In this document: one piece after another, positions 12,315 to 48,604 of the stretch
Layout of the letters: each line of letters opens with the position of its first letter
Numbering within the stretch: the stretch's first letter is position 1
Source of the DNA: Girardia tigrina
Lineage: Eukaryota
DNA: 63,486 nucleotides
Reading direction: 5' to 3'
Assembly (NCBI GenBank): GCA_001938485.1
Contig: MQRK01246086.1
Coordinates: 1 to 63,486 of the forward strand
The notes under the pieces: model-generated
The model's database searches: none
What the model was told of the DNA's origin: nothing
Seen by the model: the letters and a program-made list of their open reading frames with translations, nothing else
Position numbers and translations under genes: made by a program

Positions 12315-13943
12315 ATGGATTATACACCGTGCAAACGAAAAGCTTGGGGAAGAGCATTAGACAAATATTCACCCTCAAAATGCACATTAAACTCTCCCAT
12401 TAACCCAATTTATGCTCACATTAAACAAAAGAATCTTTTAGACGATCCGTTTTTCGAAGGACTTTTATTAGGGACAATGTTGAGCGAAGAAAACTACTAT
12501 TTGAACTCGATCTCAATTGTCCACGAAATGCACAACGATCCCGACCCTTTGATTAAAATGTTTCGAAATTCCTGGTCGAAATCGAATCTCTTCGATCGAT
12601 TAACCAATGTTTACTATTTAGCGGAGGGAACATATGGAAAAGTTTTCGAGGCCACTGATAAATATAGTGATAGGAGATTCGCGATTAAAAGTATCATTCC
12701 AGATGACAAGTCCCAATACGACCATTTGTATTCGTTGTGGAAGATCTTTATGGAAAGAAATATCTTATTATCGTCAAACGATTCACCTTTTATGACTCGA
12801 TTGTTTGCGACATTTCAAGACGTTGATAAAAAATCTTTTTGGATATTTATGGAATATTGCTATTGTACACTTGATGATCTTTTTGGAGTTTTTATAAAAA
12901 GCGATATTAAAGAACGCTGCAGCTCGTTTTTGCAAGGTCTCCCGGTGATTAAGGAGAATTCAGCCGTTGCCTCTCAATATATCGGAATGAGTTATGAAAT
13001 ACTATCGTTCATATACTTCTTCCAACTACTATGTGCTCTTCATTATCTCGCCGATCGACATATTGTTCACGCTGATATTAAATCTGATAATGTTCTCATT
13101 GCGACTAATGGACAAGCGAAATTGAGTGATTTAGGAGCTGCCCAAAGATTCAGGTGGATCGATAAACGATCTGCCTTGCACATAATAAAGGATATTGATA
13201 ATATGAAGAAAGAAGTCGAAGAATATGATTTTCAATTCAAGAGATCGGGAAACACGACTTACTTAGATCCGGAAACTACGATTCGGTTTTATAAACAATT
13301 CGATGAAGAATCATTTTATGAAATTGACAGAACGTTTCCATTAGAAGAACTTTATTCCGATGAAAAGTTAACTAGACAAACATTCTTGACGGATTATTAT
13401 GCAGTTTGTGTTGTGATCTTAGAGATGCTGTTAGGGGGAGTTGTGTTGAGTAGTATATATTACTATGAACCTTTGGAACTTAAAAAATTTCAGTTATCCA
13501 AAAACCATATGAAATATATAAATATCTCGTTGGCATATAATGAAAGGATTTTTAATAAAGTTATCTACGAAAATCTCAAAAAATCCTTTCTTAATCATTC
13601 TCATTTTCAAGTCGCTCAGTTATTGGCTTATGGGTTGCTTGAGCGCAAAATCAGAGGCAGTGGTTATAAACGAGATATCAAGATTTATAGGAATAATCAA
13701 GTAGAAGTAGAACCGGCGATTGATATTAATAAGGTAGAAACATTGCATTTTTTCAAAGAACATCACGTACAAGTAGAAGGTGCCTCATTTCTCATATTTC
13801 CAGAGAGATTTCTAGCGATTTTAAGAAAGATTAACGAAAAAAAAGTATTAAAAAAACCCGTCAATTTAAATGAGCTGACCATTGAAATTCCCGGAATTTC
13901 AATGCCCACAGCCCCCTATACCTATACGACTGAAGATTTTTGA
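12315..13943 (+). CDS. Intronless atypical Ser/Thr protein kinase (non-RD; AGC-like N-lobe), paralog 1
   Basis: 542-aa ORF with AEGTYGKV G-loop, FAIK, ERNIL (alphaC Glu), HADIKSDN catalytic loop, DLG, GNTTYLDPE and DYYAVCVVILEML. Confidence 0.92.
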   Translation: MDYTPCKRKAWGRALDKYSPSKCTLNSPINPIYAHIKQKNLLDDPFFEGLLLGTMLSEENYYLNSISIVHEMHNDPDPLIKMFRNSWSKSNLFDRLTNVYYLAEGTYGKVFEATDKYSDRRFAIKSIIPDDKSQYDHLYSLWKIFMERNILLSSNDSPFMTRLFATFQDVDKKSFWIFMEYCYCTLDDLFGVFIKSDIKERCSSFLQGLPVIKENSAVASQYIGMSYEILSFIYFFQLLCALHYLADRHIVHADIKSDNVLIATNGQAKLSDLGAAQRFRWIDKRSALHIIKDIDNMKKEVEEYDFQFKRSGNTTYLDPETTIRFYKQFDEESFYEIDRTFPLEELYSDEKLTRQTFLTDYYAVCVVILEMLLGGVVLSSIYYYEPLELKKFQLSKNHMKYINISLAYNERIFNKVIYENLKKSFLNHSHFQVAQLLAYGLLERKIRGSGYKRDIKIYRNNQVEVEPAIDINKVETLHFFKEHHVQVEGASFLIFPERFLAILRKINEKKVLKKPVNLNELTIEIPGISMPTAPYTYTTEDF

Positions 13944-14888
13944 ATATTATATATGGGAATTTCGTTTCTTATTTTATTTTCGTAAATTCCTATTTTATTA
14001 ATTCTTGTTTCCTTTAAAGATTTGATTTTATCTTTGAAAATTTATATTCCAAAATCTAAATATATGTTATTAAAACAACCTTTATATTTCTCGAATAAAA
14101 ATTATTACGTAAATATATTTGAACCCCATGTTATTGAAAACCTTTACTTTTATAAAAAATTCTCTGTGTTCGGGTAAAATAGGTTGTGACCGGATAATTC
14201 GTTGCAGCGCATTTTGGTCACAGGACAATTCGTCGCATATATTTGAATTAAAATTATTAACGACTAATGTAGATATTTTTTACAATCGACGATCCTGATC
14301 ACGATATTTCTTTTTTCTCAAAGGAGGATCTTCACCTGCAATCATATGTTATGAACCACATCGTCGAAAAATTTTTATTTTTATTTTTATTGTTTTTATT
14401 TTATTGTTTTTCTCAGAACCATTCGAAATTTGAATTCACCGTTATTGCTTCCCGTTGCCATAGTTTTTCTCTGTTGCTTATTTTACAATTCTACGGATTT
14501 AATTTACATGTTATTTTATGTGTTGCGTAATTTACTAATAGGTATATTAAATTCGAGTGAACACTTTAAAAAAACCATTGGACGATAATTTATAATTATT
14601 CGAATATAAAATTATTAGAAATTTATTTGTTAAGATTGTTAACAAAATTTTATAAAATATAAAATTAAATTATATAAGTTTTTTTAATTTTTAGAACAAT
14701 CCTAAAATAATAATTAATATTTGGAATATGCATTCTCTGGTTTATTTTCTATTAAATCAATTAAAATAAAAACTTTATATTATTACTATTCATTAATTGT
14801 AAAATTAAGTAAGTATATCTACTTCAAATTTTGATTATAATGTTAGGAAAAAATATAGAAATATTAAACTTTTTACAGAATATTTGGA

Positions 14889-15748
14889 ATGGAACCGAAA
14901 TCCAAAAAAGCGAAAAGTCTCCCATGTTCATGGGAGGAAACATATGGGTGTGTTAAAATAGGTGCAAGTGCTGTGTGCACATTATGTACTGAATCTATAA
15001 CTGCAAGAACATATAATATTGAACGTCATTTCCAAACCAAACACAAAAATTCATTGAGTACAATGCAGGAAGACGAAAAATTAGAACATATAAAAAATGT
15101 GTGATGCAATATGGTCAACAAAAGAATTCATTACAGCAGTTCGTAATTAAACATCAGCAATCAACGAAGTCGAGATTTATTGCTTCGCTTAACATAGCTA
15201 AGTACGGAAAACCTTTTTTGGATGGTGAGTTTTTAAAAAATACATTTTTAGAATGTGCGGATTCACTTTTTGATGACTACAAAATCAAAAATGATATACT
15301 TAAACGTATAAAAGAAATGCCTTTATTAGCTAGAACTGTTCAACGTCGTATTGAAGAGATGTCAAAAGATGTTGATATGCAAGTCAAAGATCATCTATTA
15401 AATTGTGATGTTGTTAGCTTCGCTATTGATGAAAGCACAGATATTAATAATATTGCTAGGTTGGCCATAGTTGCCCGATATGGATTCATCAATTCTCCAG
15501 ATATACATGAAGAACTTTGTGAACTTGCACCTATGACAGGTACCATGAAAGGGGTTGATATTTTTGAAAAATTAATGTCGTTTATTAATTTTAAAAACGG
15601 AAAATCCTTAGATTAAAAAAAAACTTTTCTCAGTTACTACTGATGGCGCACCAGCAATGTTGGTTTTGTAAAATTATTGGAAAACTGGCTTGAACGTCCA
15701 CTTTTATCATTTTATTGCGTCATTCATGAAGAGAGTTTATGCGCAAAA
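14889..15748 (+). mobile_element. hAT (Buster/Charlie/SPIN, GTF2IRD2-like) transposase, frameshifted and 3'-truncated
   Basis: BED-like CTLC..RHFQTKH, KPFLDGEFLK, FAIDESTDI, VTTDGAPAM and CVIHEESLCAK motifs. Confidence 0.88.
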
Positions 15749-16189
15749 GCAAAAAAAAGAAATTGAGATGAAGCTTTATTCCAGTAGGATGGAATCGTTT
15801 TTGATATTTGAAAATTATGTCCGATCGTTTTCGTGGGATAGACTCCATCCGTTTAAAGGTCGAATGGTCGCAAGAGCGAGCGAAAGTATCGATCAAATTA
15901 GAGACTACATTGGCATCGTGACGAATCGGATTAGTCATTTAAGAGGTGTCAAAATTAAAGGCTTAAAATACTCGAATAGTTACTCTAGCGAACAATTGAA
16001 CCACTTGATTCAACAATTATCGCTCATCGAAACGACGGAAATAAATTCGGTAAATGCGGTTTTAACGTGGATAATGTGCGACGGACGCGAATTTGTGATG
16101 CAGAATCAAAGACTCAATCATATTGTGAAAACAGATAAATGTATGTTACATATATATATATATATTCTAACATATATATTAGTAAATGT

Positions 16190-16365
16190 ATAAATGATAA
16201 TAATAATGAAAATAATAATAAAAATAATAGTAAAAATATTAATAAAAATAATAAAATTAAAAATATTAACAGTGAAAATAAGGATGATAAAAATAAAAAT
16301 ATTGACAAAAATAAAAATAGAAGTTCTACCAAAAATATAGATGATAATAATAATAAATTAGATAA
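16190..16365 (+). repeat. Degenerate (AAT/GAT)n low-complexity tract
   Basis: aataataatgaaaataataataaaaataatagt...; explains the spurious Asn-rich and Leu-rich ORFs. Confidence 0.8.
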
Positions 16366-16599
16366 CGACGCAATCGAACCCACTCCCATCCCCTTGATGA
16401 CCCGCGGGAGGTCAAGATATGATATAAGCTTCCACTGCGCTGCTACCGCAACAATGACTCTAAATGTGATTGTAATAAACATTCAAACGAGACTTGTTTA
16501 AATGTTCTTAATACATAAAGAATAGATGTGAAAAATTTTTTTGATTTAGTAGTTCAAAAGATGTACTAGTGAATTTATACCAGTCATAATACAATATTT

Positions 16600-17200
16600 C
16601 GTTCTGCTAGTAATATAATCGTTAAAAACACTTTGGTATTCCTTAAATTATTGAAGCATTCCATGTGTGCGAAATGGGTAAATCCCAAAATCTTGAGAGT
16701 CAAAACCCATCTGTGATTATGATAGATCTAGAACTTGTGGCAGTATGTGCAGTTTGAGTTGAATTTCCAAAAGCTCAAAATAAAATACGTTTTTTTCGTT
16801 TCTGTCAATACTTTTGGAAAAAAAATTCAAAGTATCTGCTTAGCGTCTAAATATGGAGTTCATGAAAGTTTCAGTGTCAGTGTCAAACAATTTTACACCT
16901 TAGCATTTAACCTACCTCCAGAAATACCTGAAGCATTCGAAGTGTTAAAACATCATATTCACCCTGATGCTAAAGAGTTGGTAAGACGATTTGAGGAAAA
17001 TTATGCACTTGAACGAGTTAAAATACTTCCTCGGGATGGTGTTGAAATTAGATCAACTCCTTTATTTTCTTTATTTATGTGGTGTGTATTTGATTTAATT
17101 CATCAAGGTATTCCAAAAACACAGAATATCGTCGAGGCTTGGCACTGAAGACAGGAATTTGTTATTGGGCGATCTCATATCGGAATTTTTGTGTCATAAG
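16600..17200 (+). mobile_element. MULE/Mutator transposase C-terminal remnant, copy 1
   Basis: IMIDLELVA..EFPKAQ..FFRFCQ; LAFNLPPEIPEAFE..FEENY..WCVFD..PKTQNIVEAWH. Confidence 0.75.
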
Positions 17201-17678
17201 AGTTTTTTTTCCTTTTCTTCATCTCCGTTTGCAAACAAATGATCTGTCTTGTTATTTTGATGCAAGACAGGAAGATATATTTAAAACGCCTACTTATAAA
17301 TTATAAGTAGTTTATATTATTTTTTATTGTTTTTTTTGAAATTATGTTTTCTTTAATTGGCAAAATAAAGTTCTGTCTGCATAAAATAAATTTTCCTTGT
17401 GCTCATATCCCTTTTCAAACAAATGATATTTCTTTTTTGTTATCTTGGTGTAAAACAAAAAGATGCACGAATGTTTAAAAATGGAAGGAAAGTGCACAAA
17501 ATTCAATTCAAAAGTGAAATTAATCAAAATTCAGTGAAATAATAAAACAATATTTTCATATAAAAAATTTAGAAACCATGCCTTTCTTTTCCATTGTTTT
17601 CAACACTTACAAATGTTAGTGTAAATAGATTTATTAGCATCAAGATAACAAAATGTATTTTTTTTATTTATTAATTTT

Positions 17679-17975
17679 GGTACTTGTCTTTTTTTCAAGT
17701 ATAGGTGAAAAAGAAGACTGATTTTTAACTAAAAATTCGGTTTAAAAAATATAGGGGAAAAGAACTGTTGGAGGTAGGGTTAGGGAGGTTTAAGGTTTTT
17801 TGAATTGTTGACACCACGACTTCACCGGCAAATTATTATGTTGAACTTCTTGAAAATCGCAGTAATGAATGGAGAGCATATCAGCAAATTAAACAAGTCT
17901 GTTTTTTGTTAATCAAAAAAAAGTGAAGTAGGTGGGAAAGACTATTTTATAGTATGGGGAAAAAAGACAAGGTCC
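17679..17975. mobile_element. Merlin-like MITE
   Basis: Imperfect TIRs ggtacttgtcttttttt / gaaaaaagacaaggtcc; flanked by near-duplicated 8-mers ttaatttt / taaatttt. Confidence 0.5.
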
Positions 17976-18154
17976 TAAATTTTTAATATTTATTTATATA
18001 AATTTGAAGTAGAGGTATCACATATTTGTGAAACACTTGTATACATGCTACGTCATTACAACTGCATCATGATATTAATTTTCTTTCACATGACACACGA
18101 TTCGTACCATATAAATTTGAATAGAAATATTAGTAAGCCGTCTAACGGAGTTTA

Positions 18155-18292
18155 AGGGTGTTTGGGGAAGTCGGTGTCGTAGTCTAAATCAGAGTCACGG
18201 AACTCGACTCCGATAAAATTAATTAGAAATATTAAAAATTGACCTAAAAAGGAGTCGAAATCGGACAATTTTAGTCCGACTCCGCAGCCCTG
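18155..18292. mobile_element. hAT-type MITE terminus with GGAGTCG subterminal repeats
   Basis: Ends ccgactccgcagccctg (reverse complement CAGGGCTGCGGAGTCGG); related copy at ~35335-35480. Confidence 0.6.
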
Positions 18293-20413
18293 GTTTTGAT
18301 GGAAGCCGATCGATCTTGATGTAATTGTGATTCTTTAGTTCATTTTTCATCATTGGAGCGGAGAATTGCCAATTTGACCGAACATTTTTGCCAGTTTCAG
18401 AAATTAAAATAATTAATTAAAATTAAAAAATTAAATGAATAAATAATTAAATAAAAAAATAATTAACTTAAATAATCGATGAAAATTCCAAAAAAATATT
18501 TGTTGTCGATTCCTTGATGCAATTTTAACCGACAATTTAGCGAAACGTTTATTTAATTTTAATAAATAAACTCATTTGCCGAAACAAAGACAAACATTAT
18601 TTTGATTATATAATTTGAACTGTCGAAATCGAAAATGTAAATTATCAAATTGTGAGCCTCTTTTTTTGGCATTGTAATTAAACTTTCTTTGCCAATGTAA
18701 GTATGTCTTTTTTGTTTGTATGAATCTGATTGAATGATTGCATGTATGTGTTAATATGTGATTATGTAATTCGAATGATGTGTATAATGAAATAAAAATG
18801 ATTGGTTTAAATGTGTATTTTTTATGTGTGTTAATTTTGCGGATTGTTATCACAAGTTTTAAATCAATTTTTTTAAAAAGGAGTCACAATTTTTCAATTC
18901 AATTTAAAAGAGAATTTTGTAAAATAAAAAAAGTTTCAAATAAAAGTTCTTGATTCGAATTTGAATAAAATAATTTTATGGTGATTTAAATATATGGAAA
19001 TAAATTGACAAAATAATGAAAATGTGGGAAAAACTCGGACGTGAAGTTAAAGTTCAACATAAAGATGAACAACTGAAAGTCATTTGTCCAGCCAATTTAA
19101 AATTGGTGCCTGAATTCATCATAACATCGATAACGAGTGCGCTATCACTCGAAGTTTTCCCGGCAGATAAAGATGCGTGTCATCATTTTCTCGGTTGGAA
19201 TATCGCCACATTTGAATTGCGTAAACGAAATGGGATTCCGCTGAATATTTTGTTCAATAAAATGAAAAGCACTTTTCAACCGACATGCACAATGAAAAAC
19301 AATTCTTCTCTTTCTAAAATATCGCGGAGACACGGCTTCCTGTCCAATCATCATTTACATTTCCTTTCGTTAACGAAAATTAAATTAATTTTCCTCCGTC
19401 TTTATTTAATTAATATCAAATTTCAGAAAACATTTTGTTGATTTACTTTTATGAAATCAGAATTAACATTTTTAAAATAATTTTAATTAAAATTAATTTT
19501 ATTAATTCGTGTTTTCAACGCTGACATGTTACTATAAATAGATTTATTTGCAGCCAGATAACAATATCCTTTGATTGCACACGCATATGAAGGCAATGAA
19601 AATAACAAATGTTGTCTATATACACCAAAATCATTTGTAAACACCATGGAAAATGGAGGCGAGGTTTTTTTAAAAAATTTTATACTTGTTTTAATTTATG
19701 TTAATTTCTTTTATTATATTTGGTTACGCGATTTTTTGACGATGTTTTGGCCTGCTGTTTGGTTATTGACAGATTTGTCCATTGAAAGATGAATTGCGAG
19801 TAAAACAATTTAGTATCAACAATCAATGTTAGAAATTCAAAAACGAGCGGAAATTAATCGATAAAGTAAAGAAAATGTCAACTTTGGAAATTCCATATAA
19901 TTCGAAGAACAAGTAGAGAAGAGAAATGCTAATGAAACATCCAAAACAGAATTATATAATAATAAAAATAAAGTCGCAGCTGGGACAGTCCATCAGTAAC
20001 ACGTCGACACCGCCTTCTCGACACAATCTATAATTCACCTTCGCAGAACAATTTCTGTTCAAATGTTCATCGAGACCGTTAGCGATGTTGTCTCTAACAT
20101 TTGTTAAAGTCAAACAATCATTCTAATCAAATACACATCAAATCGATCGTTCAGACAAACAACCCTCACCTCCGTATTAACGATTATGCCACAGTTGCAT
20201 TTGATCAGATTGTGTTCCAAAAACAAAAAATTCCTGAAATTCAAAATCATATTGAACACACAAAAAACAAATTAATCAATATCATACACATAATTTTAGA
20301 GACAGAAATATATATTAAAAATAATCTATTATATTCAAAAAATTAAAAAATGGTGACAACTTATTTTTAAAATCAAAAGTACGCCATTTGTTAAATAGAC
20401 ATTTATTTTTCAT

Positions 20414-21130: not shown

Positions 21131-21810
21131 TATATATTATAAAAGCCCAAGTCACTCACTGCTTCACTAACGCTGACGTAATAATCAACTGTGCATTACG
21201 TTGACATTAAGAATGCAATTTGTTAACCTGATAAATGAAATATGTTGACATGATGGATGCATGACGATATCACCTTGGATACGGTCATGTTTTGAGTGGT
21301 TGATACGATATTGGTTGATAACATAGCACAATATCATAATATAATACATATCTATAATATAATATATGCATACATAATGTGTATAATATGATGATTTTGA
21401 TGGTTTTTGCCTAGGCTGAAGTAAATTTGACAGAATAGATTTTATTGANNNNNNNNNNNNNNNNNNNNNNNNNNNNNNNNNNNNNNNNNNNNNNNNNNNN
21501 NNNNNNNNNNNNNNNNNNNNNNNNNNNNNNNNNNNNNNNNNNNNNNNNNNNNNNNNNNNNNNNNNNNNNNNNNNNNNNNNNNNNNNNNNNNNNNNNNNNN
21601 NNNNNNNNNNNNNNNNNNNNNNNNNNNNNNNNNNNNNNNNNNNNNNNNNNNNNNNNNNNNNNNNNNNNNNNNNNNNNNNNNNNNNNNNNNNNNNNACCTT
21701 ACAGCATTAGTGAGGCAGTGAGGCAGGCAGTGAGTGACTTGGGCTTTTATAAGATAAAAAAAATTGAACCCCCGGCAAGAGAGGGCCGCGAAGCGGGCCG
21801 AGCGCGCTAG
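21131..21810 (+). mobile_element. Non-autonomous Helitron(s): inverted 5'-end copies and a 3' hairpin-CTAG terminus
   Basis: ttataaaagcccaagtcactcactgc at ~21137, with its reverse complement at ~21702-21753 across the gap; GC hairpin ggccgcgaagcgggcc followed by CTAG|T at 21807-21811. Confidence 0.6.
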
Positions 21811-21837
21811 TATATATTATAAAATAATAAATAATTA

Positions 21838-24660: not shown

Positions 24661-26101
24661 TAAGAATTATCAAATAATAACCGAAAAAAAATAATTAAAA
24701 ATTTCAAACGCATTTTTCAGAAATATATCACGAAAATATCCATCGAATTTTTCACAAATTATCAAATATTAACCGAAAAAAAATATTTAAATAATAAAAT
24801 TAAATGTTTTAAAATTCAGAAAAAATATTTCTAGAAGTAGTCGAAAATTATCGGATATAAACTGAAAAAAAAATATTTCTAAAATTAAATCAAAATATTT
24901 AACGAATTATCGGAATTAAATGAAAAAAAACGAATGTTTAAAGTTAATTGTTCCGATTAATCGATACTCTCAAACTGGTGGATCGATAACCAAAACATAC
25001 AAAAATATTTGTCAAGTTTAACCTTGGTGCATTTCCATGAATATTTCATCCTCAATTTGCTTCCACTCGTCGACACTAAAATTAATTTCCTAATTCGATA
25101 AAGTCATTTAATGCGCGGTTAAATTCGTAAAATGTGATACATTCTGCAACGAAAATTCGTTCATTGTTTCTCGAAAATTGTCGCGATTTACATTAGTCAA
25201 ACTCGCTCGTTTCAGCAATTTCTCGTTGATAATTGTTTCTCGACATTTCTTTTCATATATGAAAAATTAAATTCAATTAAAAAAATAGATATTTTCGGTT
25301 GTTTTTTTCGTCAATTCACTTTCATAAATTGTTCTCGTTTATAATTTTGCGAACGATTGTAGAGATGTTGGTGATTCATATTTGAATTGATCGCAAATTC
25401 TTTTTGGGTTATTTAAACAAAGATTTTTTGAGGCGGATATTTTTTTAAGAATTATAATGTTTAATTTTGATTTTCAAATTTTGTGTTGAAATTTTAAATA
25501 AAAATGTGGTATAAAATTAAAAAGATTTTTTATTTAATAACAGTAAATTTAGAAATTATCTAACTTTAAGGGTTGCTATAAAAGCTAGAAATTCGCATAT
25601 AAATTAGTAAATATAAAAAGAAGTTTTTAAACATGCTTTATATGTGAATCGAATTTCAAACCGGTTTGGGTTACAAAATGACTGTTTGACTAGGAGTTTT
25701 TAATTTGTGTTTCGCGACGTCGAAACTGTGACATCACGATAGTATATTAAACTATTCAGTGTGACTCTAAAATGTTGACCAAAAAATCGGTGTAGATTGC
25801 TGACTTAGATTACCTGGTTTTCGATGCATAGAAAATATAGAAATATAGAGAAGAATAGAATACCTGGAATCAAGAAAATCAATATTTTTTTAATTCTTTA
25901 TGACAAAGATATAACCAAATAAACTAGATGAATAAGGAATTTATTTATGTATTTATTACGAAAAAATACATATTTTTCGCTTCATACTTTTATTTTTAAA
26001 ATGGGGACAATTCGTTTGTTATTTTGACAAAAATGACTAATTAATCTTTCAGATATTAATTCTATAAAAACAAATAAACGCCATTTAAAAATATATTTTA
26101 G

Positions 26102-26141
26102 GATAATATATTTCGACGGTTTAACCGTCATCATCAGATCA
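26102..26141 (-). ncRNA. Minimal type I hammerhead ribozyme motif (inverted pLTR)
   Basis: Exact reverse complement of the motif at 27257-27295. Confidence 0.78.
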
Positions 26142-27256
26142 CTGATTATGTTCTTTTTTATTGCTTTTATATAAGAAAATGAATGATTATGTAATCACTT
26201 ACGTAAGTCAAATCGAAAACTCTTAACAAATTAGTTGAAAAAAACACTACTTTATAAGAGATATGTGGATGATATCTTTCTAGTCTTTGAATCTCGAGAA
26301 CATGTTTTTCCTTTTCTAGATTACATGAATTCGATTCATCCAAATATAATCTTTACAGTAGAACAGCAAATAAACGGAAAATTACCATTCCTTGATTTGT
26401 TAATTGAAAGAAAAAATGATCATTATGAAACTGAAATATATCGAAAGAAAACTGATACTGGTTTGTACACCTCCATAAACAGTTTTTGTGAATTTAAATA
26501 TAAAAGGAATATGATTAAAGGTTTGTTATACCGCTCTTGGTCTCTTTCTTCCACGTTTTCAAAATCTATTAAAAGTATTGATACATTGAGCAAGTTATTG
26601 AATAATAACGGTTACTCTAAGTCCATCATAGACAGACTCACTCGTGAGACTGTATATAAAATAATTGAAAAAGAAAAAATGAAAAATGAAAAAATTAATA
26701 GTTTAAACATTGAAAACTGCTTTACACCCGGGTATACTCTAAGCTTACCTTACTCCGAGGGTTTTAAACACCTCAAGAATTCGATCTTGAAATCAACAAA
26801 TAACATTTGAAATTTAAAAATTATTTCTCAATCATTTAAAGTTGAGAATATGTTTTACAATAAATCAGATACTCCTTTAGGATTGTGTTCGGACATTGTT
26901 TATCAATACACATGTAATGGGTGCAATGCCACATACATCGGAGAGACTGCCGTCATTTCTGCAAACGAGTCCAAGAACACAGTCAAAAAGGGGGAAAGAG
27001 TAATATTGCTGAGCATAAAAAAACGTGTAAATGTAATATGAGCATAAATGATTTTAAGATTTTGTGCAAGCATTTTAAAAATTATTGGGAGAGAGTGTCA
27101 TGTGAAGCATTGTTGATAAGATCATGTGATCCTAAAATCAATGTTCAAACAGCACTCTCAACTAATTTGTTAAGAGTTTTCGATTAGACTTATATAAGTG
27201 ATTACATAATCATTCATTTTCTTATATAAAAAGCAATAAAAAAGAACATAATCAGT

Positions 27257-27295
27257 GATCTGATGATGACGGTTAAACCGTCGAAATATATTATC
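27257..27295 (+). ncRNA. Minimal type I hammerhead ribozyme motif (3' pLTR)
   Basis: GAU-CUGAUGA-U-GACGG uuaaa CCGUC-GAAA-UAUAUU-AUC. Confidence 0.8.
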
Positions 27296-27889
27296 CTAAA
27301 ATATATTTTTAAATGGCGTTTATTTGCTTTTAATAAAAAATCGCCATCTTTTTTCAAGTTTATTTGTAATTCTATAAAAGATTCATATATTATCATCATA
27401 AATTCACATTGGAACAACATTTCAGCTCAAAAGAAAACGAAAAATGATTGTTAAATTGCTTAAGAAATTTTTGACACACATTCACATAAATAAACAGGAC
27501 TTGAGCTATGAAAAACATGGTCAACATTTTTAAAAACAATAATGAAAATTAATTCGATTAAAAATGTTTGAAATTATAAAAGTGTAGTTCGGAATTTCGA
27601 TTAAAATTTTCTTTGATTGTTTGTTTTTAGCAAAAATTTTGAACAAAAACTATAAACGGTATTGAAAAAATAAAAAAAATATTTAAAACTGTAGTTCTCG
27701 GAAAAACTAACATTAAATAAATTGAAAAAAACTTTAAATTTTGATTTTTGTTTAGTTAAACTAAAAGGGTAAAAAGTCGATGGCACAATTTTAATTTTTT
27801 GTAAGTGGATTTGTGAATAAAGAAATAAATGTTCATTTTTATTCTCATCTTGTTATTTTTTATCATAAAAAATAACGCAAAAAATAACC

Positions 27890-32864: not shown

Positions 32865-33697
32865 TTATTATTATTACCACGTTTTTATTAGTTTGCTTTC
32901 TTGTCTGTTTGTCTGTTTGTCTGGAACAAATCTTGCGATTGATTTTTTGACCACTTTCAGTCATCCAATTGAGCTGAATTTTTTTATACAGGCTTGCTTC
33001 CGATGACAATACAATTTGATAAAAAAAATTTTGAAAAAAAAATTTTTTTCTAATTTTTTTTGCAAAAAACCACTTACGATTATTTACAAATTTATACACT
33101 GTATTAAATAGCAATCTTTTCGTTTATTTTCATGAATGTAGTTTTATACAGGCTTGCTTCCGATGACAATACAATTTGATAAAAAAAAATTTGAAAAAAA
33201 ATTCCTAAATGATAACTAAAAATAGTTAAATAATATTATTAATAAAAAAAAAATTTTTATAAAAACAACCACGTTTTTCAAGCATTACCAACACACTAAA
33301 AAGAGGAAAATAATTTTTTTCTAGACATGTGAGAAATTTTATACCTAACCAAAAACGTGGGGCATAGAAATGATCGATTGTTACTAAAAAGCAGTAAAGA
33401 GGAAATAGCAGNNNNNNNNNNNNNNNNNNNNNNNNNNNNNNNNNNNNNNNNNNNNNNNNNNNNNNNNNNNAACCAAAAACGTGGGGCATAGAAATGATCG
33501 ATTGTTACTAAAAAGCAGTAAAGAGGAAATAGCAGTTACTAATAGCAGTAATTCAGAAATCCACCCCACGTTTTTGGTTAGGTATAAAAATTCTCACATG
33601 TCTAGAAAAAAATTATTTTCCTCTTTTTAGTGCATTGGTAATGCTTGAAAAACGTGGTTGTTTTTATAAAAAAATTTTTTTATTAATAATATTATTA
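32865..33697. mobile_element. HINE/Helentron-like element(s) with (TGTC/TGTT)n microsatellite and a large palindrome
   Basis: ttattaccacgtttt..tgtctgtttgtctgtttgtctg; arms ~33226-33362 and ~33564-33697 are reverse complements; internal direct repeat ~32985/33143. Confidence 0.5.
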
Positions 33698-34559
33698 TCT
33701 TATTGTGCTCCTGCCCATTCTCAGTTAGGTCTTGTGAATCTGGATTCTGATGCAAACTGGCGTAATATTAGTCTCTATTTTCCTATTTCGGTTCATCTTA
33801 TTAGTGAAACGTTTCCTAAAAATGTCAAGTTCGTCCCAAACATTTGTATAACTAAGTGAACTAACCCTTTGATCATATCATCTTTTTATTTCTCCACAGA
33901 TTTACATTTTATCAAGTTCTTTGTCTTTGACCTATCTTGTATTATTTAATTTCATATTTAATTTAATGTCATAAAAAGCATATTTATTAATCAAAATAAA
34001 TATCCACGGAGTCACTACATTTTCCATTCTTTTTATTAGCTTGCTTTCTATATATATCATATTTAATTGTTTATAAATATGTATATTTGATCAAAAGATG
34101 ATATGATCCATGGAATTTAGAAACATATTTTTGAAGGCTTTTTAACCAATCGATTTTCTCTCATCTTTGCACACTTACTCCTTTTCGATGACAATAAATG
34201 ATAATGCACGAACTGGATCAAACTAGAAAATCAAAAAATTGTTTTTGCAGAAACGTTTCACGATTATCCACAAATGTTTAAACTGAACTAAATAGAAATG
34301 TTTTAGTTTTTTCCTTCCATGCTTTATAATAAATTTATTATGTTATTAGTAACTATTTAACTGCAAAATGGAGTTGTAAACTTTTTTTATGAAATCTTTC
34401 ATTCTACAAAACATTTTAATAATTACAAATAACATAATAAATTAAATAAAAATATAATAGTAATTTTCCATTCTACAATAGATAAAAAAATTCTGTTGGC
34501 CAAGCAGAGTTCTGTCCATATAAATAATGGATATGAAAAATATTTTTGATTTACTAGTT

Positions 34560-35200
34560 CAAAAGATGAGCAAGTGAATTTATGCCGGTCATAATACAAT
34601 CTTTCATTCTGCTGGTAATATAATCGTAAAAGCCACTTTGGTATTCCTTAAATTTTTGAAGTATTCCATGTGTGCGAAATGGATAAACCCTAAAACATCG
34701 ACAGTCTAAACCAATCTGTGATTATGATAGATCTAGAACTTGTGGCAGTATGTGCAGTTCGAGTTGAATTTCCAAAAGCTCAAAATAAAATACGTTTTTT
34801 TCATTTCTGTCAATACTTTTGGAAAAAATTCAAAGTATATGCTTAACTTCTAAATACGGAGCTCGTGAAAGTTTCAGTGTCAGTGTCAAACAATTTTACG
34901 CCTACCTCCAGAAATACCTGAAGCATTTGAAGTGTAAAAACATCATATTCTTCCTGACGCTAAAGAGTTGGTAAGATGATTTGAGAAAAATTATGCACAT
35001 GAACGAGTTAAAAGACATCTACGGGATCGTACTGAAATTAGATCAGCTCCTTTATTTGCTCCATTTCTGTGGTGTGTATTTGATTTAATTCATCAAGGTA
35101 TTCCAAAAACACAGAATACCGTCGAGGCTTGGCACCGAAGACGAGAATTTGTTATTGGGCGATCTCATATCGGAATTTTTAGTATCATAAGAGTTTTTCC
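34560..35200 (+). mobile_element. MULE transposase remnant, copy 2
   Basis: Closely alignable to 16550-17200. Confidence 0.75.
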
Positions 35201-36436
35201 TTGTCTTCATCTCCGTTTGCAAACAAATGATCTTTCTTGTTATCTTGATGCAAAACACGAAGATTAATTGAAAAAAAGTCTACTTATTTATTATAAGTAG
35301 TTTATATTATTTTTTTTGAAATTATGTTTTTAAGGGTGTTTGAGGAAGTCGGAGTCGTAGTCTAAGTCAGATTCGGGGAACTCGACTCTGAAAAAATTAA
35401 TAACAAATATTATAAATTGACATAAAAAGGAGTCGAAGTGGGACACTTTAAAAATATAGGAGTTGAAGTTGGACAATTATTGGTTTTGATGGAAGCCGAT
35501 CGATCTTGATGTAATTGTGTTTCTGTTGTTCATTTTTCATCATCATTTAAATTTCATTTCGTTAACAAAAATTAAATTATTTTTCCTCCATCTTTATTTA
35601 ATTAATATCAGAATTCAGAAAACATTTTGTTGATTTACTTTTATGAAATCAAAATTAACATTTTTTAAAATAATTTTAATTAAAATTAATTTTATTAATT
35701 CGTGTTTTCAATATTGACATATGTTACTATAAATAGATTTATTTGCAGCAAGATAACAAAATCATTTGATTGCACACGCATATGAAGGCAATGAAAATAA
35801 CAAATGTTGTCTATATACACCAAAATATATATGTCTATATACATTTGCAAACACCATGGAAAATGAAGGCGAGATTTAAAAAAAAATGGAAAAAAATACA
35901 AAACTTATTTTTGAAGGCCTTTCACTCAAGGCCTTTTCGCCTTTCACCAAAGAAATGGTCGAATTAATTAATACAATGCCGGTTAACCACTTTAATAATA
36001 AAAATATCGAATTATTAAATGTGGTGGCCGAAGAGTTTCTGGATACAACTATAAAATCCATAAAGTTTGACAAATCAAACAACGGAGAACGAGTCGGAAT
36101 AAACCCATGCTAAATGGAGGACTTTTCAGGAAGTCCAAACGCGTGCGGTCATACTGGTTCCGCGATTTGTGGACATGACCAAGGGAAACCAGAGAAATCG
36201 ACCGATATTCGACCGACTAACCGACTGACCGACCGACTGGATAATGGAACAAAGGAAATATACGGTGTTTGATTGTAAAAAATGAGGCTCGGTTGAGAGA
36301 GCAAATCAATAACGAATGTAGTGAAACGATATTTGAAATGGAGAGGGATAATGCTCAGAACATGAATCTCCGCGCTCGAATGCAAGTATAAATGCTGCGA
36401 CGATCTAAAGCGAACTCTAAATTCAATTTCGGTTGC

Positions 36437-37470: not shown

Positions 37471-38158
37471 GCAAACAGAACATCGGCCGATCGCTGATAT
37501 TCAATTTCGACCAATCTAAAAATAAATGGCCATTGATTGGTCAGTCTAAAAATAGATTGGCTTTGGGATTGGTCGGTCTTCAAGATGTGGTTGCCATGGG
37601 TATCAGAATCAATAAATTCAATGACGACTTGTTCCACGTCTGGTTACTCCAGCTCACTAATTGTGCCATCAAAGTTCAAATGATCGAATGGAACTCGATT
37701 GATTTCGAATCATAAATTTATTATAATTGATTGTTTTACTGTTTTTAGAATTTTCGATGTTTGTGGTTGACTTAATTTTTTAGCAGTATTTGACATTGTA
37801 CACCTTCACTGAAAACGGACTATTGATAAATATTATTTTGATTTCTCAGTGACTATTTCAATAAAAAACGTTTAATCGTGTTGATTATATTTGCCGAAGG
37901 ACAGTATATATTTCAATGAATCGTTTGTTATGGATTTAATCGATATTTGTTCTGTCATCATTGTATAATCGATTCGTGTTCTTGTTCAAATAATGCAATT
38001 TCTTGGATTTTGAAATGTGAAAGAAAAACACCAAATCAGTTTTGTGGAATAATTATATAAATATTAATGTATTTTTATGTGTGTTGTTTAAATAATCATT
38101 ATTGTAAATTGTTAATTCAAATATATTTTTCTTAGTTGGATATTCTCTTTCACAACAG

Positions 38159-38176
38159 TGGCGTCATGAGCAGGAT
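38159..38176 (+). promoter_or_regulatory. Primer-binding site, tRNA-Ser-like
   Basis: TGGCGTCATGAGCAGGAT 1 nt after the LTR; resembles the complement of a metazoan tRNA-Ser 3' end (..ATCCTGTTCGTGACG-CCA, from memory). Confidence 0.7.
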
Positions 38177-39659
38177 CAAAGCCGATAGTGGAGATCACCA
38201 GTCAAAATTACTGGAAGTAATTTCGAATAGAATCCTGAAAAAGGACTCCGCCAAAACTCCGAAAACATTCGAAGAAGGGGACGATGCTGTCCAATTTTTA
38301 AAATGCATGGATGCATTTATGCGGCAACTTGAAATATCGGAGGAAACACAAGCTGACTTCTTCATGGAATACTTGGAGGAAGATGTTCAGTGTTTTCTGA
38401 AGTCGCAGTGGGGTTACACCCAAAACCAAAAGAGTTTCGAATGGCTCAAGGAAACTTTTTTGAAGCTGTTTGGACGAAAGAAGTCAGATATTTCATCGTG
38501 GATGAAACTATTTGGCATTCGACAGAAGGATGGCCAATCAACGAAGGACTTTATGAAAGAAATAAGAATTCGTTGTTTTAAAGAATTACCGGAGTTGACC
38601 TCCGAAGAAAGAGAGCCAAAAACTCTCCAAATTTTTATAAATGGTTTAATGAATGACAGAGCTCAAAAAGCACTAAAAGTGTTGCAGCCTAAAACTTTGG
38701 ATGAAGCATTCGAGATGATAAAAAAAGAATGTGTAACTCAGGAGATGTCGGCAACAGTAAATGTGCTGACCGAGAATGATGAAATTCGAATGCTCAGGGA
38801 TGAAATTTCAGAACTGAACAAACGTATTACCTCATTGCAGGAAACGGTAAAAGGGCTGCAGCATGAAAGACAATCGAGTCAATGGAAAGACGATAATAGA
38901 ATGAGAAATCCTGTCAAAGAAACAAGTGAATGCTGGAATTGTGGGAGCAGCAGTGACATTTTGAGAGACTGTAAAAAGTCTCGATTCTGCAAAAAATGCA
39001 ACAAAAAGGGACATATAGATAAGTTTTGTCTAAACGGAAAATGTAAATCAGTCCATGTGGTCGAGTCTGCCAGTATATCCAGTAATGAAAGTGAAACAGA
39101 TACGGGAACAGGTACGGAAGAACCGAGCATTTGTCATATTTTAAATGCAAAGAAGTCGTATGTCAGAGCGATGAAAGAAACAGTTCCGAAACAAAAGGGA
39201 CAGAATAATTTTCGAGTAAAGAAGAGCAGTTATAAAGTAAAAGATCAGAACAAACCAATGTGTTACGGTCGGATCAATGGGAATAGTAAAAAGATCTTAT
39301 TAGATACCGGAGCCGAAGTGAATGCTATCAGCAAAGACATGCTAATGGAGTTGCAAGATTCAGATAAAACATTGAAAACCAGACGTTCATCCAGAAAAAT
39401 CAAATATGTAGATGGATTTACAGTGCCTGTACGAGCGGAAGTATCCCTGATAGTTGAATTGGGTGCTAAAGGGAAAAGTTGCAATTTCTTTGTTGTGGAT
39501 GGATTGAGCCCGAATATAATTCTTGGGATACGGAGTATGAAGAGTCTTTGGATTAAGATTGATCTCGATAATAATGGTGTTAATAGTGGAACAATTTTCG
39601 TTCCATTCGTTTCGAAGGTGAATGCAGATACGACAGTCCCGACAAATCAGTTAAACTGA
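38165..39659 (+). CDS. Gag-protease polyprotein of the Gypsy element
   Basis: Open frame with two zinc knuckles (CWNCGSSSDILRDC degenerate; CKKCNKKGHIDKFC) and aspartic protease LLDTGAEV. Confidence 0.88.
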
Positions 39660-39707
39660 AAGGGCACTGTTTGAGGAGTCGGAAGCAGTATGTGCTCCAT
39701 GAGACTC
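39650..39707 (+). promoter_or_regulatory. Putative -1 programmed ribosomal frameshift signal (slippery heptamer plus pseudoknot)
   Basis: G_TTA_AAC immediately before the gag-PR stop; 5-nt spacer; stem GGGCACTGTTT/AAGCAG-TAT-GTGCTC; loop GAGTC pairs with downstream GACTC. Confidence 0.65.
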
Positions 39708-40935
39708 AGACTGTAGCAGCTGCCGTTACACGAGAAGCGCCTGAAAGTTTCGTGTCTCTTATCCCAATATAGATGTGTGAATAATTGCAATAGAGACAAT
39801 ATTATTAGTTTAGTGAAAGAATTCAGAGACGTATTTAGTTGGTCTAAATATGATATAGGCTTGGCGCGGAACGCTGAGCATAAAATAGAGCTTAAAGATA
39901 ATGGCCCGATACAGGAGCAAACCAGGAGAATTCCGGTGGCGCTCCAAGAAAATGTGGATGAGTTTGTTGAACAGTTGCTACAGAAAAATATTATTCAACA
40001 AAGACTATCAGAGTGGAACGCTCCTATAGTGATTGTGCCAAAAAAGGACGGAGATATTCGACTTACAGTAGATTACCGGAGACTAAATCAAAAGACTAAA
40101 GTTCCATCATTTCCAATTTTTGACGCACAACAACTTTTCGATACCTTGGGAGGAGCAAAACACTTTAGTACAATTGATTTGACTGCAGGATATTATAACA
40201 TAAGTCTTGCAGAGTGTGATAGAGAGAAAACAGCGTTTAGTACTAGAAAAGGACATTGAGAGTTTTTGAGGTTGCCAATGGGCTTAGCGGCAGCGCCAGC
40301 AACGTTCCAAAGAGTTATGAAAGCGATATTAAAGGAAAAACACTTGAGGGAATGCTTGATATATTTGGATGATATTCTAGTTTTTGGGAAGACACAAGAG
40401 GAGCATTTAGTCAGACTGCGAAAAGTATTATCCAAAATCAAAGAAGCCGGTCTAAAGATTGTACCAGCAAAGTGCCAATTTTTTGCAAGGGACGTAAAGT
40501 ACCTGGGCCATAGAGTATCAGCCAATGGAATTTCAATGGACGAGGATAAAATCAAGTGCATCCAGGAGTGACCACAGCCAGAGTCTCAAGAGGAAATGAG
40601 ACAATTTCTTGGACTTTGCGGATACTATCGCAATTATATTAAAGAGTACGCTAAAATTGTTGCACCAATAGAAGACACATGTAAAGACTGTTTGAACAAA
40701 GCTAGGACTAGAAAATTAAACCTGTTGCAATGGTCAGCCTGTTTGGGTGACGCATTTCTTCATTTGAAACAATGTTTAATGACCGCGCCAATTTTAGCAG
40801 TTCCGAATATCTACGACCAATTCATATTGGATACGGATGTATGTGATAACACGATTGGATGCGTCCTTTCTCAAGTGCAAAGTGGTGATGAAAAAGTAAT
40901 AGCCTACGCTTCGCATAAGTTGTCTACAGCAGAAC

Positions 40936-41456
40936 GGTTCTAGGTGCTTTGACCACAGGTGCTTTGACCATAGGGGGTTTGACCATAGGTGGTTTGTCCA
41001 CAGCGGGGGTTTGATCACAGGGGGTTTGACCATAGTTGATATATGGTTTCAATATATAAAATTTTTTTTTAAATTTCAATACTTAAAATTTTAATTAAAA
41101 TATTTTTGCCATTATTACCAAATAATATTTTAATAAAATAAAATATATTAAAAAATATTCTATTTAAACTTAATATACATTTTAAAATCATATTATTAGT
41201 AACAACTAAAATATTAGATTCTAACCCACATAAGCCAAAATCATGGAGAACTATACAAATATTAAAATGCTAAATTTCCAATTATTGCTGATGATGATGT
41301 ATGTAATCATCAAAACATAAATAAATATATAAAAGAAGCTTTAATCAAATTATATTTTAAAAATATTAAAAACTGTGGACAAACCACCTATGGTCAAACC
41401 CCCTATGGTCAAACCCCCGCTGTGGACAAACCCCCTATGGTCAAACCCCCTATGGT
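40936..41456. mobile_element. Foldback/MULE-like MITE with tandem ~15-bp terminal repeats inserted in Gypsy RNase H
   Basis: (ggggtttgaccatag)-type array at 40940-41035 is mirrored by a (ctatggtcaaacccc) array at 41373-41457; it splits YASHKLSTAE|QHYCVTRKE; CAGAAC on both sides. Confidence 0.85.
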
Positions 41457-43019
41457 CAGAACAACATTATTGTGTGACACGAAAAGAGTTACTGAGTGTC
41501 TATAAATTCACAACAATGTTTAGACACTATTTATTTGGAAGAAGATTTAGTATAAGAACTGACCACAAAGCTCTATGCTGGATGATGAATAGGAAAACAC
41601 CGAGTACAAGTCAATTTAGTTTAAGGCTCAATGAATTGAGTGTCTTTGATATGGATATCCAATACCGGAAAGGAGAAGAACATAAGAATGCGGACGCTCT
41701 ATCTCGAGCGCCAGAGCAATGCTAGCAATGTGCAATGAGCCACGAAAATCCGAGGGCATAACGAAATGTTAAATATTACAATGAAAATCAAAATGATAAA
41801 AAAAGACATGCTTTACGCAACAGCGAAGTCATCTGGATGTGAATGGAGAGGCGAGCCCATTTGTTGAATTTGGATTAAGAAATAAAATTTGTAGAAGCAC
41901 TGGATTCTCTTCCTTCGAGGTGATTTTTGGTCGGAAAATGAGGTCTTTCTACTCGGAAAAGAAAGTGAGTCCAGCAAATGATGGAAACTATTGCAAATAT
42001 ATCACATAGCTTCAACAAGTGTTACAAGTGGTGAGCCAACATATCAAGATCAAACAAGAAATTAAAAAACCAGCTACATCAGATTCAGGGAGTTGTTTGG
42101 CAATTGGTGATCTAGTGCTGCCTAGAATACTACCACGAATCAAAGGAATCGATATGCTGAGATACGAAGGGCCATATGCGGTGATCGGTAACATGGGGAA
42201 GCATGCGTACAGATTAAAAAGGATTAGTAATGGAGAAATGTGGTGCATATCAAAAGATTGAGAACACCACAAAATGACACTAGAAAATCAGAAAAGGCTA
42301 TAACAATTATGTCAAAAAGTATCAAAAATGATCATCATGATGTACATGAAGAAGACCAAATGCCAGAGGAAGATCGACGGAATATTAATGAAACAAGAGT
42401 GAGACGCAATCCAGTTCGAGACCGACATAAGCCTAAAAGATACAAAAAATAAGTTGTCGAACAGCGCGAGTGTGGAATAATTATGTAAATATTAATGTAT
42501 TTTAATGTATGTGTTGTTTTAATAATCATTATTGTAAATTGTTAATTCAAATATATTTTTCTTAGTTGGATATTCTCTTTCACAACAAGTTTGGAGACTG
42601 AATCAGTGATCGAGATCAATTTAACGAAATTCCTTTCATCGACAACAAAATTCGGCTATCTATAAATAAACGACCCATTATTGGCCAATCTAAAAATAGA
42701 TTGGCCAATCTGGGAATAACTCGAACATCTTTTCATAATGATTTTGATTTTCGAGAGAATATGTTGTGATATTCGATTTTGTGAATATTAGATTGTTTAA
42801 ATCGTTTAATTTAGAAAATAAAAATATTGCGCGAAAAAGTTTTGTTGATTTAATTGAAAAGTGGCCATTTTTTTAAAAAAGTCGGTGTTTTAAATTGAAA
42901 GAAACAAATATTCGCCAACGAATATCGATTGAAAATCGAATCGGAATTAAATTCGATTTGTAACGACGTTTTAAAATTACTGATCGATTATCTCATTCCA
43001 TTGGCCATGAAAAGTGAAC

Positions 43020-46886: not shown

Positions 46887-46993
46887 CTCAAAATCAACGG
46901 GAAAAACATTATAATATTATATTATATAGGTATATTTAAAAATCAATAAAACATTTATTATCAATAAATTCAATTAAAATAAATTATTTTATT

Positions 46994-48604
46994 ATGGAAA
47001 AAATAAGAAGCGCCTGGCAAAGAGCCCTTGACAAATTTTCGCCTTCGAAATGCACATTACTCTCTCCCGTTAACCCAATTTATGCTCATACTAAACAAAG
47101 TCATCATTTAAATGATCATTTTGTCGAAGGACTTTTGTTAGCGACAATGTTGAGTGAAGAAAACTACTATTTGAACTCAATCTCAATTGTCCACGAAATG
47201 CACAACGATCCCGACACATTGATAAAGATATTTCGAAATTCCTGGTCTCAAGATAACTTGTTTGACCGTTTGGAAAACGTTTATTTCCTTGGACAAGGTT
47301 CATTTGGAAGTGTTTTCGAGGCCACCGATAAATATAGCGGTAGAAAGCTAGCGATTAAGACAATCATTCCCGAAGACAATTCTCAATACGACCATTTATA
47401 TTCTTTGTGGCAAATCTTTATGGAAAGAAATATCTTATTGTCGGCAAACGATTCTCCTTATATGACTCGATTGTTTGCGACATTTCAAGACGTCGATAAG
47501 AAAACTTTTTGGATAATCATGGAGTATTGCTACATTACGCTCCAATCATTAATTAAACGGGTCACAGAAAAAGATTATAAATCCTATTCTAGAGCTTTAA
47601 TCAGTGGAGACGATGTGATTTTCAATATTTCTAAATATGTCAGCAAAAAAATCGGAATGAATTATATAACGCTATCGTTTGTATACTTCTTTCAACTGCT
47701 CAGTGCTCTTCATTATCTCGCTGATCGGCATATTGTTCACGCTGATATTAAATCCGATAATGTTCTCATTGCGACTAATGGACAAGCGAAATTGAGTGAT
47801 TTAGGAGCTGCCCAAAGATTCAGGTGGATCGATAAACGATCTGCCTTGCACATCATAAGAGATATTGATAATATGAAGCAAAAAGTCGAAGAATACGATT
47901 TCGAATTCAAAAGATCGGGTAATGTTGGATATTTAGATCCGGAAACAACGATTCGGTATTATAAAACGACAAGTCGATCTAAATATTTGAAAATTAAAAG
48001 TATTTATCCATTTGATGATCTTCATTTAAATGAAAAGTCGACTAGACAAACATTCTTGACAGATTATTATGCAGTTTGTGTTGTGATCTTAGAGATGCTG
48101 TTAGGGGGAGTTGTGTTGAGTACTCACCGTTCCTTTCACATCCCAGATCTTTTGAATCTCAAGATGACGGAAAACGAAATATATTTTATAAATATCTCTT
48201 TGGCGTTTAACGACAGAATATTTCGTAAAGTTTTCTATGATAATTTAAAAAGTTCGTTTAACGGTCAGCACTTACAAGTAATAAAAGTTTTGTCATATGG
48301 ACTGCTCGATAGAGAGAGAAGAGCTGTTGGGTTAAAGAGAAATATTCTCCTTTATAGGAATAATCAAATTGAAATAGAACCGGCAATTGATATAAGAAAA
48401 ATCGAATTATTAAAATTTTATAAACGTAACAATATCAAATTTGAAAACGCATCTGCTGTCATTGCTCCTGACGAATTCTTTTACTTTGTAAAACCTCATC
48501 ATCAGGAACAGAAGGAGGGAATTGATCTAAAATGTCTGACAATTGATATTCCAGCAAGAATAGTTCCCACGACTTCTTATACATACACATCAGTAGATCT
48601 CTAA
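46994..48604 (+). CDS. Intronless atypical Ser/Thr protein kinase (non-RD), paralog 2
   Basis: 536-aa ORF with GQGSFGSV, LAIK, ERNIL, HADIKSDN, DLG and GNVGYLDPE; colinear with 12315-13943. Confidence 0.92.
   Translation: MEKIRSAWQRALDKFSPSKCTLLSPVNPIYAHTKQSHHLNDHFVEGLLLATMLSEENYYLNSISIVHEMHNDPDTLIKIFRNSWSQDNLFDRLENVYFLGQGSFGSVFEATDKYSGRKLAIKTIIPEDNSQYDHLYSLWQIFMERNILLSANDSPYMTRLFATFQDVDKKTFWIIMEYCYITLQSLIKRVTEKDYKSYSRALISGDDVIFNISKYVSKKIGMNYITLSFVYFFQLLSALHYLADRHIVHADIKSDNVLIATNGQAKLSDLGAAQRFRWIDKRSALHIIRDIDNMKQKVEEYDFEFKRSGNVGYLDPETTIRYYKTTSRSKYLKIKSIYPFDDLHLNEKSTRQTFLTDYYAVCVVILEMLLGGVVLSTHRSFHIPDLLNLKMTENEIYFINISLAFNDRIFRKVFYDNLKSSFNGQHLQVIKVLSYGLLDRERRAVGLKRNILLYRNNQIEIEPAIDIRKIELLKFYKRNNIKFENASAVIAPDEFFYFVKPHHQEQKEGIDLKCLTIDIPARIVPTTSYTYTSVDL

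Follow-up and report, generated by a model that had tools for sequence, protein, structure and literature searches.

The subject of this study is a 63,486-nucleotide (nt) stretch of DNA from Girardia tigrina (Eukaryota; NCBI GenBank assembly GCA_001938485.1, contig MQRK01246086.1, positions 1 to 63,486 of the forward strand), hereafter called the window, and in particular a pair of paralogous protein kinase genes therein, K1 and K2, the sequences of which alternate between nearly identical and hardly alignable segments (Table 1). The genes represent the two longest intact open reading frames (ORFs) of the window, each being one continuous frame from ATG to stop. They share 65% identity on protein level and 73% on nucleotide level, and the pair reached Pfam Pkinase scores of 80 and 94 bits (gathering cut-off 31.7). 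The surrounding DNA is AT-rich, with a guanine-cytosine (GC) content of 22-40% in 2-kb windows, and contains few long ORFs. In total 13 reach a length of 150 amino acids (aa), and transposon remains are found among the ORFs of the window, i.e., a gag-protease, pieces of reverse transcriptase and RNase H, a piggyBac-type transposase, and an integrase.

The similarity of K1 and K2 stops at the limits of the coding sequence (CDS). Neither blastn nor tblastx revealed any similarity between their flanks besides one marginal match of 34 nt, and tblastn detected no third kinase copy or fragment within the 63-kb window. Five runs of N interrupt the window, three of which (21449-21695, 29105-29154, and 33412-33470) are located between the two genes, each leaving over 7 kb to K1 and over 13 kb to K2, with no N inside either ORF. 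Scaffold joins determine how far apart K1 and K2 lie (approximately 33 kb), whether they are linked, and how they are oriented to each other, whereas the reading frames do not depend on them. The gap at 33412-33470 is bracketed by a perfect direct repeat of 65 nt (33347-33411 and 33471-33535), as if Ns had been inserted between two contig ends whose overlap was left unmerged; an inverted repeat of 134 nt (33229-33362 and 33564-33696, 95.5% identity) is found near the same gap. Upstream of each kinase gene, a pair of ATCAATAAA copies precedes the start codon. The motif occurs 16 times in the window compared with 5.4 expected occurrences, and the naive probability of a pair being present at both kinase genes is ~1.5e-8. 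These pairs, present in otherwise unalignable flanks, may be considered as a candidate common promoter element.

Table 1. Kinase genes of the window with their upstream motif pairs, high-identity tracts, and divergent blocks.
Feature	aa	K1 position	K2 position	Strand	Observation
K1, protein kinase gene, intact, intronless	542 aa in total	12315-13943		+	ORF; Pfam Pkinase E=2.4e-22
K2, paralog of K1, intact, intronless	536 aa in total		46994-48604	+	ORF; Pfam Pkinase match
Two ATCAATAAA copies		12233-12241, 12262-12270		+	82 and 53 nt 5' of K1 ATG
Two ATCAATAAA copies			46942-46950, 46960-46968	+	52 and 34 nt 5' of K2 ATG
Tract 1, N-terminal family-specific region	47-77	12454-12545	47124-47215	+	4/92 mismatches
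Tract 2, alphaC to beta5	134-177	12714-12845	47384-47515	+	11/132 mismatches
Tract 3		13033-13225	47703-47895	+	8/193 mismatches, core 3/148
Tract 4, alphaF helix		13371-13452	48041-48122	+	1/82 mismatches; dS 0.055
Block 1, alphaD and ~27-aa family-specific insertion before alphaE	187-222	12873-12980	47543-47650	+	22% aa identity
Block 2, ~28-aa family-specific insertion, APE motif to alphaF	328-352	13296-13370	47966-48040	+	20% aa identity
Block 3, alphaF-alphaG loop and alphaG region	380-400	13453-13514	48123-48184	+	10% aa identity

The kinase family to which both genes belong is small in public data. An exhaustive search of 1.84 billion representative proteins revealed five relatives (P0001-P0005), all lower matches being generic kinases. 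The identity of these relatives to K1/K2 ranges from 49-52% for P0001 via 31% for P0002 to 27% for P0004 and 24% for P0005, P0003 being a truncated fragment, and their Pfam Pkinase scores amount to 86-92 bits. A word-indexed protein search with K1 and the family profile returned only P0001 and one generic kinase. All 69 loci obtained by a metagenome scan turned out to be generic kinases matching solely at the catalytic loop, and a scan of viral contigs yielded no relatives. The residues G105, G108, K125, E147, D254, K256, N259, D272, G274, E320, and D360 (K1 numbering) are invariant in all six family members, thereby covering the Gly-rich loop, the beta3 Lys, the alphaC Glu, the catalytic Asp and Asn, the D-x-G Asp, the APE Glu, and the alphaF Asp. 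Judged from these catalytic residues, the members of the family are probably active kinases.

Among solved structures, STE20/MST and ASK1-type kinases are the best matches (PDB profile E=4e-14 to 1e-11), sharing with K1/K2 the canonical N-lobe, the catalytic loop, and the D-x-G motif. In contrast to them, the K1/K2 family is characterized by a non-RD catalytic loop (H-A-D in K1/K2, H-T-D or H-Q-D in the relatives), by the insertions of ~27 and ~28 aa, by a long activation segment, and by termini unmatched in the PDB. The Pfam profile match ends near position 148 of 263 and covers the N-lobe through D-x-G only. All full-length members have in common an N-terminal region with a conserved motif of the K-Y-S-P-S type and a C-terminal region with a predicted beta-hairpin; profiles of both regions gave no PDB match. 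No signal peptide was recognized by eye, the N-termini of K1 and K2 being polar and charged without a hydrophobic stretch.

The truncated relative P0003 is encoded on an ENA metagenome contig (L001). Missing from it are approximately 54 aa, spanning the beta5-hinge region, block 1, and the sequence up to the beginning of alphaE, as well as anything past the activation segment. On the same contig (L001:134-640 and L001:582-1550), a piece of ribosomal protein S3 from its N-terminal part ends less than 100 nt before the kinase ORF, and a hAT-like (DUF659) ORF is located 3' of the latter. Against animal, plant, and Euglena S3, the fragment reaches similar scores, and its scores are poor against the yeast, apicomplexan, ciliate, and trichomonad proteins. 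By its sequence, P0003 on L001 looks like a decayed or rearranged copy.

Four tracts of K1 and K2, together comprising 499 nt or 31% of the CDS, are 92-99% identical, compared with 63% identity elsewhere (segment search). Their borders are sharp, and all four fall in the most conserved protein segments of the family. A preliminary description of the locus, made from the sequence alone, had counted 3 mismatches in 148 nt (13033-13180 versus 47703-47850) and 1 in 82 nt (13371-13452 versus 48041-48122). Both counts are exact, the differences being located at the K1 positions 13052, 13058, 13085, and 13391, every one of them at a third codon position. Tract 3, to which the former stretch belongs, spans the end of alphaE, the catalytic loop (H-A-D), D-L-G, and the start of the activation segment, and holds a perfect match of 98 nt at 13086-13183. 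This is the longest perfect match between the genes, followed by one of 61 nt. The GC content at third codon positions is 0.39 in the tracts versus 0.31-0.33 elsewhere, a slight, nominal increase that would agree with GC-biased conversion.

Between nearly identical and hypervariable segments, the two tiers recognized in the preliminary description and both present, a third one has to be placed that accounts for most of the gene, showing 40-80% aa identity and saturated silent sites. Nei-Gojobori estimates of synonymous (dS) and nonsynonymous (dN) divergence were obtained for each class. The four tracts have a dS of 0.19 (0.05-0.10 in their cores) and a dN/dS of 0.13; the remaining 287 codons (54%) are saturated at a dS of 1.66 with a dN/dS of 0.17; and the three divergent blocks have a dS of 0.73, a dN of 0.99, and a dN/dS of 1.36. 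Third-position identity amounts to 0.90 in the tracts, 0.51 in the remainder, and 0.43 in the blocks, and silent changes at codons for identical amino acids were found in 15 of 148 cases within the tracts versus 77 of 172 within the remainder. Out of 335 codons that specify the same degenerate amino acid in K1 and K2, 96 differ, and no unchanged run is longer than 31 codons (permutation p=0.0015). Squared and summed, the run lengths amount to 2785 compared with an expectation of 1400 +/- 162 (p=2e-5; 100,000 permutations). In line with the preliminary description, silent divergence is hence clumped along the gene and not uniform.

The P0003 gene on L001 served as outgroup, which is distant and partial, and only codons for the same residue in K1, K2, and L001 were considered. 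In the tracts, 4 of 65 such codons differ between K1 and K2, compared with 39 of 65 between K1 and L001 (Fisher p=3e-11). This holds for tract 1 (1/17 versus 13/17), tract 2 (1/14 versus 10/14), and tract 3 (2/34 versus 16/34) individually. Outside the tracts, at aa 78-133, the differences number 9 of 16 codons in the comparison of K1 with K2 and likewise 9 of 16 in that of K1 with L001. Because L001 differs at the very codons that are shared by K1 and K2, the silent sites of the tracts are free to vary, and the likeness of K1 and K2 in the tracts therefore reflects recent common descent of those segments only. Comparison with P0001, for which protein identities only are given, showed K1 and K2 to be 91-100% identical to each other in the tracts versus 57-75% to P0001. 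At aa 461-542, K1 and K2 share 42% of their residues with each other and 38% and 40% with P0001, which is close to a trichotomy.

The divergent blocks were placed by means of the family alignment and the spacing relative to MST2, the insertion in block 1 being deduced from the MST2 spacing. Together with the predicted helices, both assign all three blocks to the kinase C-lobe, as had been proposed. In other kinases, alphaD, the region following the APE motif, and alphaG are docking elements. The peptide pairs chosen as barely alignable yet length-conserved in the preliminary description, starting at aa 187, 328, and 380 of K1 and aa 184, 325, and 377 of K2, indeed have 8 of 36, 1 of 14, and 1 of 16 residues in common without a single indel. 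The net charge changes from -1 in K1 to +4 in K2 for block 1 and from -7 to +2 for block 2. AlphaFold models were of low to moderate quality (mean pLDDT, i.e., predicted local distance difference test, of 58) and are not independent of each other, as one alignment of six sequences was common to both. A fold search with them led to generic kinases at template modeling (TM) scores of 0.3-0.5, and only the secondary structure was used. Helices are predicted at matching positions in K1 and K2 for all three blocks (local pLDDT ~70-89), block 1 being modeled as three helices in either protein. The matching helices and the absence of indels suggest that the blocks are structured insertions, constrained in length and weakly constrained in sequence.

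This variability is not restricted to the pair under study. For blocks 1, 2, and 3, the aa identity is 28%, 36%, and 24% between K1 and P0001, 31%, 16%, and 19% between K2 and P0001, and 12%, 15%, and 29% between P0004 and P0005; across every pair of family members, the blocks are 8-36% identical. The variable segments had been taken as a mark of recognition-type genes, a view that gains no support from blocks that are just as unconserved between all other members of the family. Pooled over the blocks, the proportion of nonsynonymous differences (pN) does not significantly exceed that of synonymous ones (pS; Z=1.04). The individual dN/dS values are 1.37, 2.05, and 0.91 for blocks 1, 2, and 3, each being based on 11-22 synonymous sites. 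With 0.55, the pN of the blocks lies below the pS of the remainder (0.67) as neutral yardstick, and the pS of the blocks is 0.47. Because their third-position identity is near that of the remainder and far from that of the tracts, the blocks represent old divergence without recent homogenization. Weak constraint acting over a very old divergence suffices as an explanation for the blocks and is simpler than diversifying selection. Considering the dN/dS estimate and the charge switch in block 2, some adaptive differentiation of the blocks is nevertheless possible.

On the whole, we consider it likely that K1 and K2 are functional paralogs of a rare family which were duplicated in ancient times and later on underwent interlocus gene conversion in short tracts. 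The duplication is ancient in view of the silent-site saturation across the greater part of the gene and of flanks devoid of similarity, and both copies have been under purifying selection, as seen by the dN/dS of ~0.17. We infer that at least four short stretches (80-190 nt) were transferred between the genes, from one to the other, by ectopic conversion, which might have occurred in several events or in a single event with a discontinuous tract. The tracts would then be located where purifying selection had kept the genes alike enough for homologous pairing. Linked paralogs kept similar by purifying selection favor ectopic conversion (PMC3924832). The tract ends at the edges of the insertions could result from divergence blocking the extension of heteroduplexes into DNA of 45% identity; selection against converted block variants, from which the same pattern is expected, may be responsible instead. 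Reviews cover both mismatch limits on conversion and selection against converted variants (PMC3924832; PMC3924837). The blocks themselves would be helical, length-constrained insertions under weak sequence constraint throughout the family, having drifted near saturation. Two further histories were considered and ruled out, namely recent duplication with local hypermutation, given the silent sites saturated in 54% of the codons, and segmental duplication with common flanks, given the lack of flank similarity.

The preliminary description had gone further by assuming recurrent gene conversion that homogenizes the framework of the kinases. Conversion as such finds support in the silent mosaic and in the comparison with L001, whereas its recurrence does not, since divergence shows no significant difference among the four tracts (chi-square p=0.11). 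Homogenization, in turn, applies to parts of the catalytic framework, as seen by the low-dS tracts, but not to the rest with its 54% of saturated codons. Several observations weigh against an ancient duplication followed by patchy conversion. The point estimate of dN/dS in the blocks exceeds 1, both pooled (1.36) and most clearly in block 2 (2.05), and block 2 has reversed its charge (-7 versus +2). Furthermore, the nucleotide data behind the case for conversion consist of K1, K2, and the partial outgroup sequence, assembly collapse could have contributed to the perfect 98-nt and 61-nt matches, and the linkage of both genes depends on scaffold joins over three gaps.

The former two observations would also be expected if conversion kept the scaffold and the C-lobe blocks were driven apart by diversifying selection or swapped as cassettes, in the manner of immune, allorecognition, or effector genes, as the preliminary description had suggested. 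The sharp borders and the position of the blocks on C-lobe elements which, by general kinase knowledge, mediate docking elsewhere fit such a scenario as well, and divergence peaks in converted genes are a recognized sign of selection for differences between paralogs (PMC3924837). A homogenized background, from which such peaks would rise, is missing here: dS is saturated in 54% of the codons and no alignment of the flanks is possible. The K1-K2 pattern therefore consists of valleys in an old divergence and not of peaks in a converted gene. In addition, the dN/dS of the blocks is not significantly above 1, and the blocks are equally variable among all other family members. Cassette shuffling finds no support because the silent divergence of the blocks is no higher than that of the rest of the gene (pS 0.47 versus 0.67), so that imported sequence from a more distant donor need not be assumed. 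The assignment to an immune, allorecognition, or effector family likewise lacks support, given the presence of two copies in the window, five relatives among 1.84 billion proteins, i.e., a very small family in public data, and the lack of an N-terminal hydrophobic signal as judged by eye. Altogether, this scenario appears unlikely to us. The same applies to the related idea of a lineage-restricted family with more copies elsewhere in the genome, in which the three helical C-lobe insertions would form a fast-diversifying docking surface, charge-reversed between the paralogs, and conversion would keep the catalytic engine; we regard it as rather doubtful.

An assembly artefact, with repeat sequence collapsed or consensus-polished and then inserted into two genes of truly greater divergence, has to be taken into account for a gapped scaffold in which the perfect matches (98 and 61 nt) fall below the usual length of short reads and in which the unmerged 65-nt overlap around one gap points to an imperfect assembly. 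However, the tracts retain scattered and nearly all silent differences (4/92, 11/132, 8/193, and 1/82), their divergence is graded over four separate locations, and the ORFs are intact with conserved catalytic residues, making such an origin very improbable. Even harder to reconcile with the data is a constraint on the nucleotide level, e.g., codon preference or an embedded RNA or regulatory element, holding the silent sites of the tracts without any conversion. Although the positions of the tracts match the best-conserved parts of the protein, the outgroup comparison (39 of 65 codons differing between K1 and L001 against 4 of 65 between K1 and K2) largely refutes it, and there are no Rfam matches anywhere in the window. 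We therefore attribute hardly any probability to it.

Apart from the kinase genes, the window is rich in traces of mobile elements. A retroelement of the long terminal repeat (LTR) type extends over 38043-42587, flanked by terminal direct repeats of ~115 nt (95.7% identity). Its gag-protease ORF (38136-39659) is intact and its pol region is fragmented into a reverse transcriptase part (39777-40259) and RNase H parts (40596-40943 and 41375-41725). Full-length copies with a 95% identical gag were found in two ENA metagenome assemblies (L072 and L073), so that environmental or host-associated samples contain either the retroelement or its host. Truncated ORFs encode fragments of a piggyBac-type DDE transposase (50334-51179, reverse strand; Pfam E=6e-56) and of a retroviral-type integrase core (57219-57551, forward strand). 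An inverted repeat of 175 nt (26065-26238 and 27158-27332, 97% identity), the arms of which are ~920 nt apart, could represent a foldback element or the termini of a small DNA transposon. Downstream of K1, 16515-19667 shares dispersed repeats with 34299-35877, as does 8245-8646 with 29391-29792 (80-90% identity); these repeats are presumably transposon remains. For the ORF at 15690-16193 (forward strand), Pfam reports DUF5738 (E=8e-13) and, weakly overlapping with it, the peptidase C50 family of separases; the ORF is possibly, together with the adjoining ORF 15101-15616, an exon of a host gene. Prefoldin-like and DUF5738-like ORFs had no matches in the PDB, and neither the Rfam nor the tRNA scan of the window returned a hit. 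The transposon content, the gapped scaffold, and the animal- or plant-like S3 fragment beside the relative on L001 are indicative of a eukaryote that is multicellular or has a large genome, and the sequence does not resemble human DNA.

In comparison to known systems, K1 and K2 resemble the amylase, Hsp70, and cuticle-protein duplicates of Drosophila (PMC3924832) in having short tracts of near-identity, silent sites included, between paralogs on the same strand tens of kb apart, and in the concentration of these tracts where purifying selection keeps the copies similar. In contrast to the concerted evolution of whole genes in Drosophila, merely 31% of the CDS is homogenized in K1/K2 and the rest is saturated, corresponding to a late, patchy stage. 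With the red/green opsins, RHCE/RHD, and the protocadherin clusters, described by the model of Teshima and Innan (PMC3924837), the pair shares the sharp alternation of similar and different segments. In those cases, however, the background including introns and flanks is homogenized and the peaks mark selected sites, whereas the background of K1/K2 is saturated (dS 1.66) and its flanks are unalignable. Exchange between paralogs and variable surface segments are also found in the RPP8 paralogs of plant nucleotide-binding leucine-rich repeat (NLR) genes (bioRxiv 10.1101/694240). Unlike such immune families, K1/K2 show no family expansion in the window or in public data, no dN/dS significantly above 1, no secretion signal by eye, and no blocks specific to the pair. 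The underlying mechanism is a known and ordinary one acting on an uncharacterized orphan kinase family, and no new mechanism is indicated. Being very rare in public data and combining PDB-unmatched termini with a non-RD loop, the family may merit note as an orphan kinase family in its own right. K1 and K2 provide a small and clean case of the interplay of conversion and constraint late in the life of a duplicate, with exchange persisting only in islands kept alike by purifying selection and ending at weakly constrained insertions.

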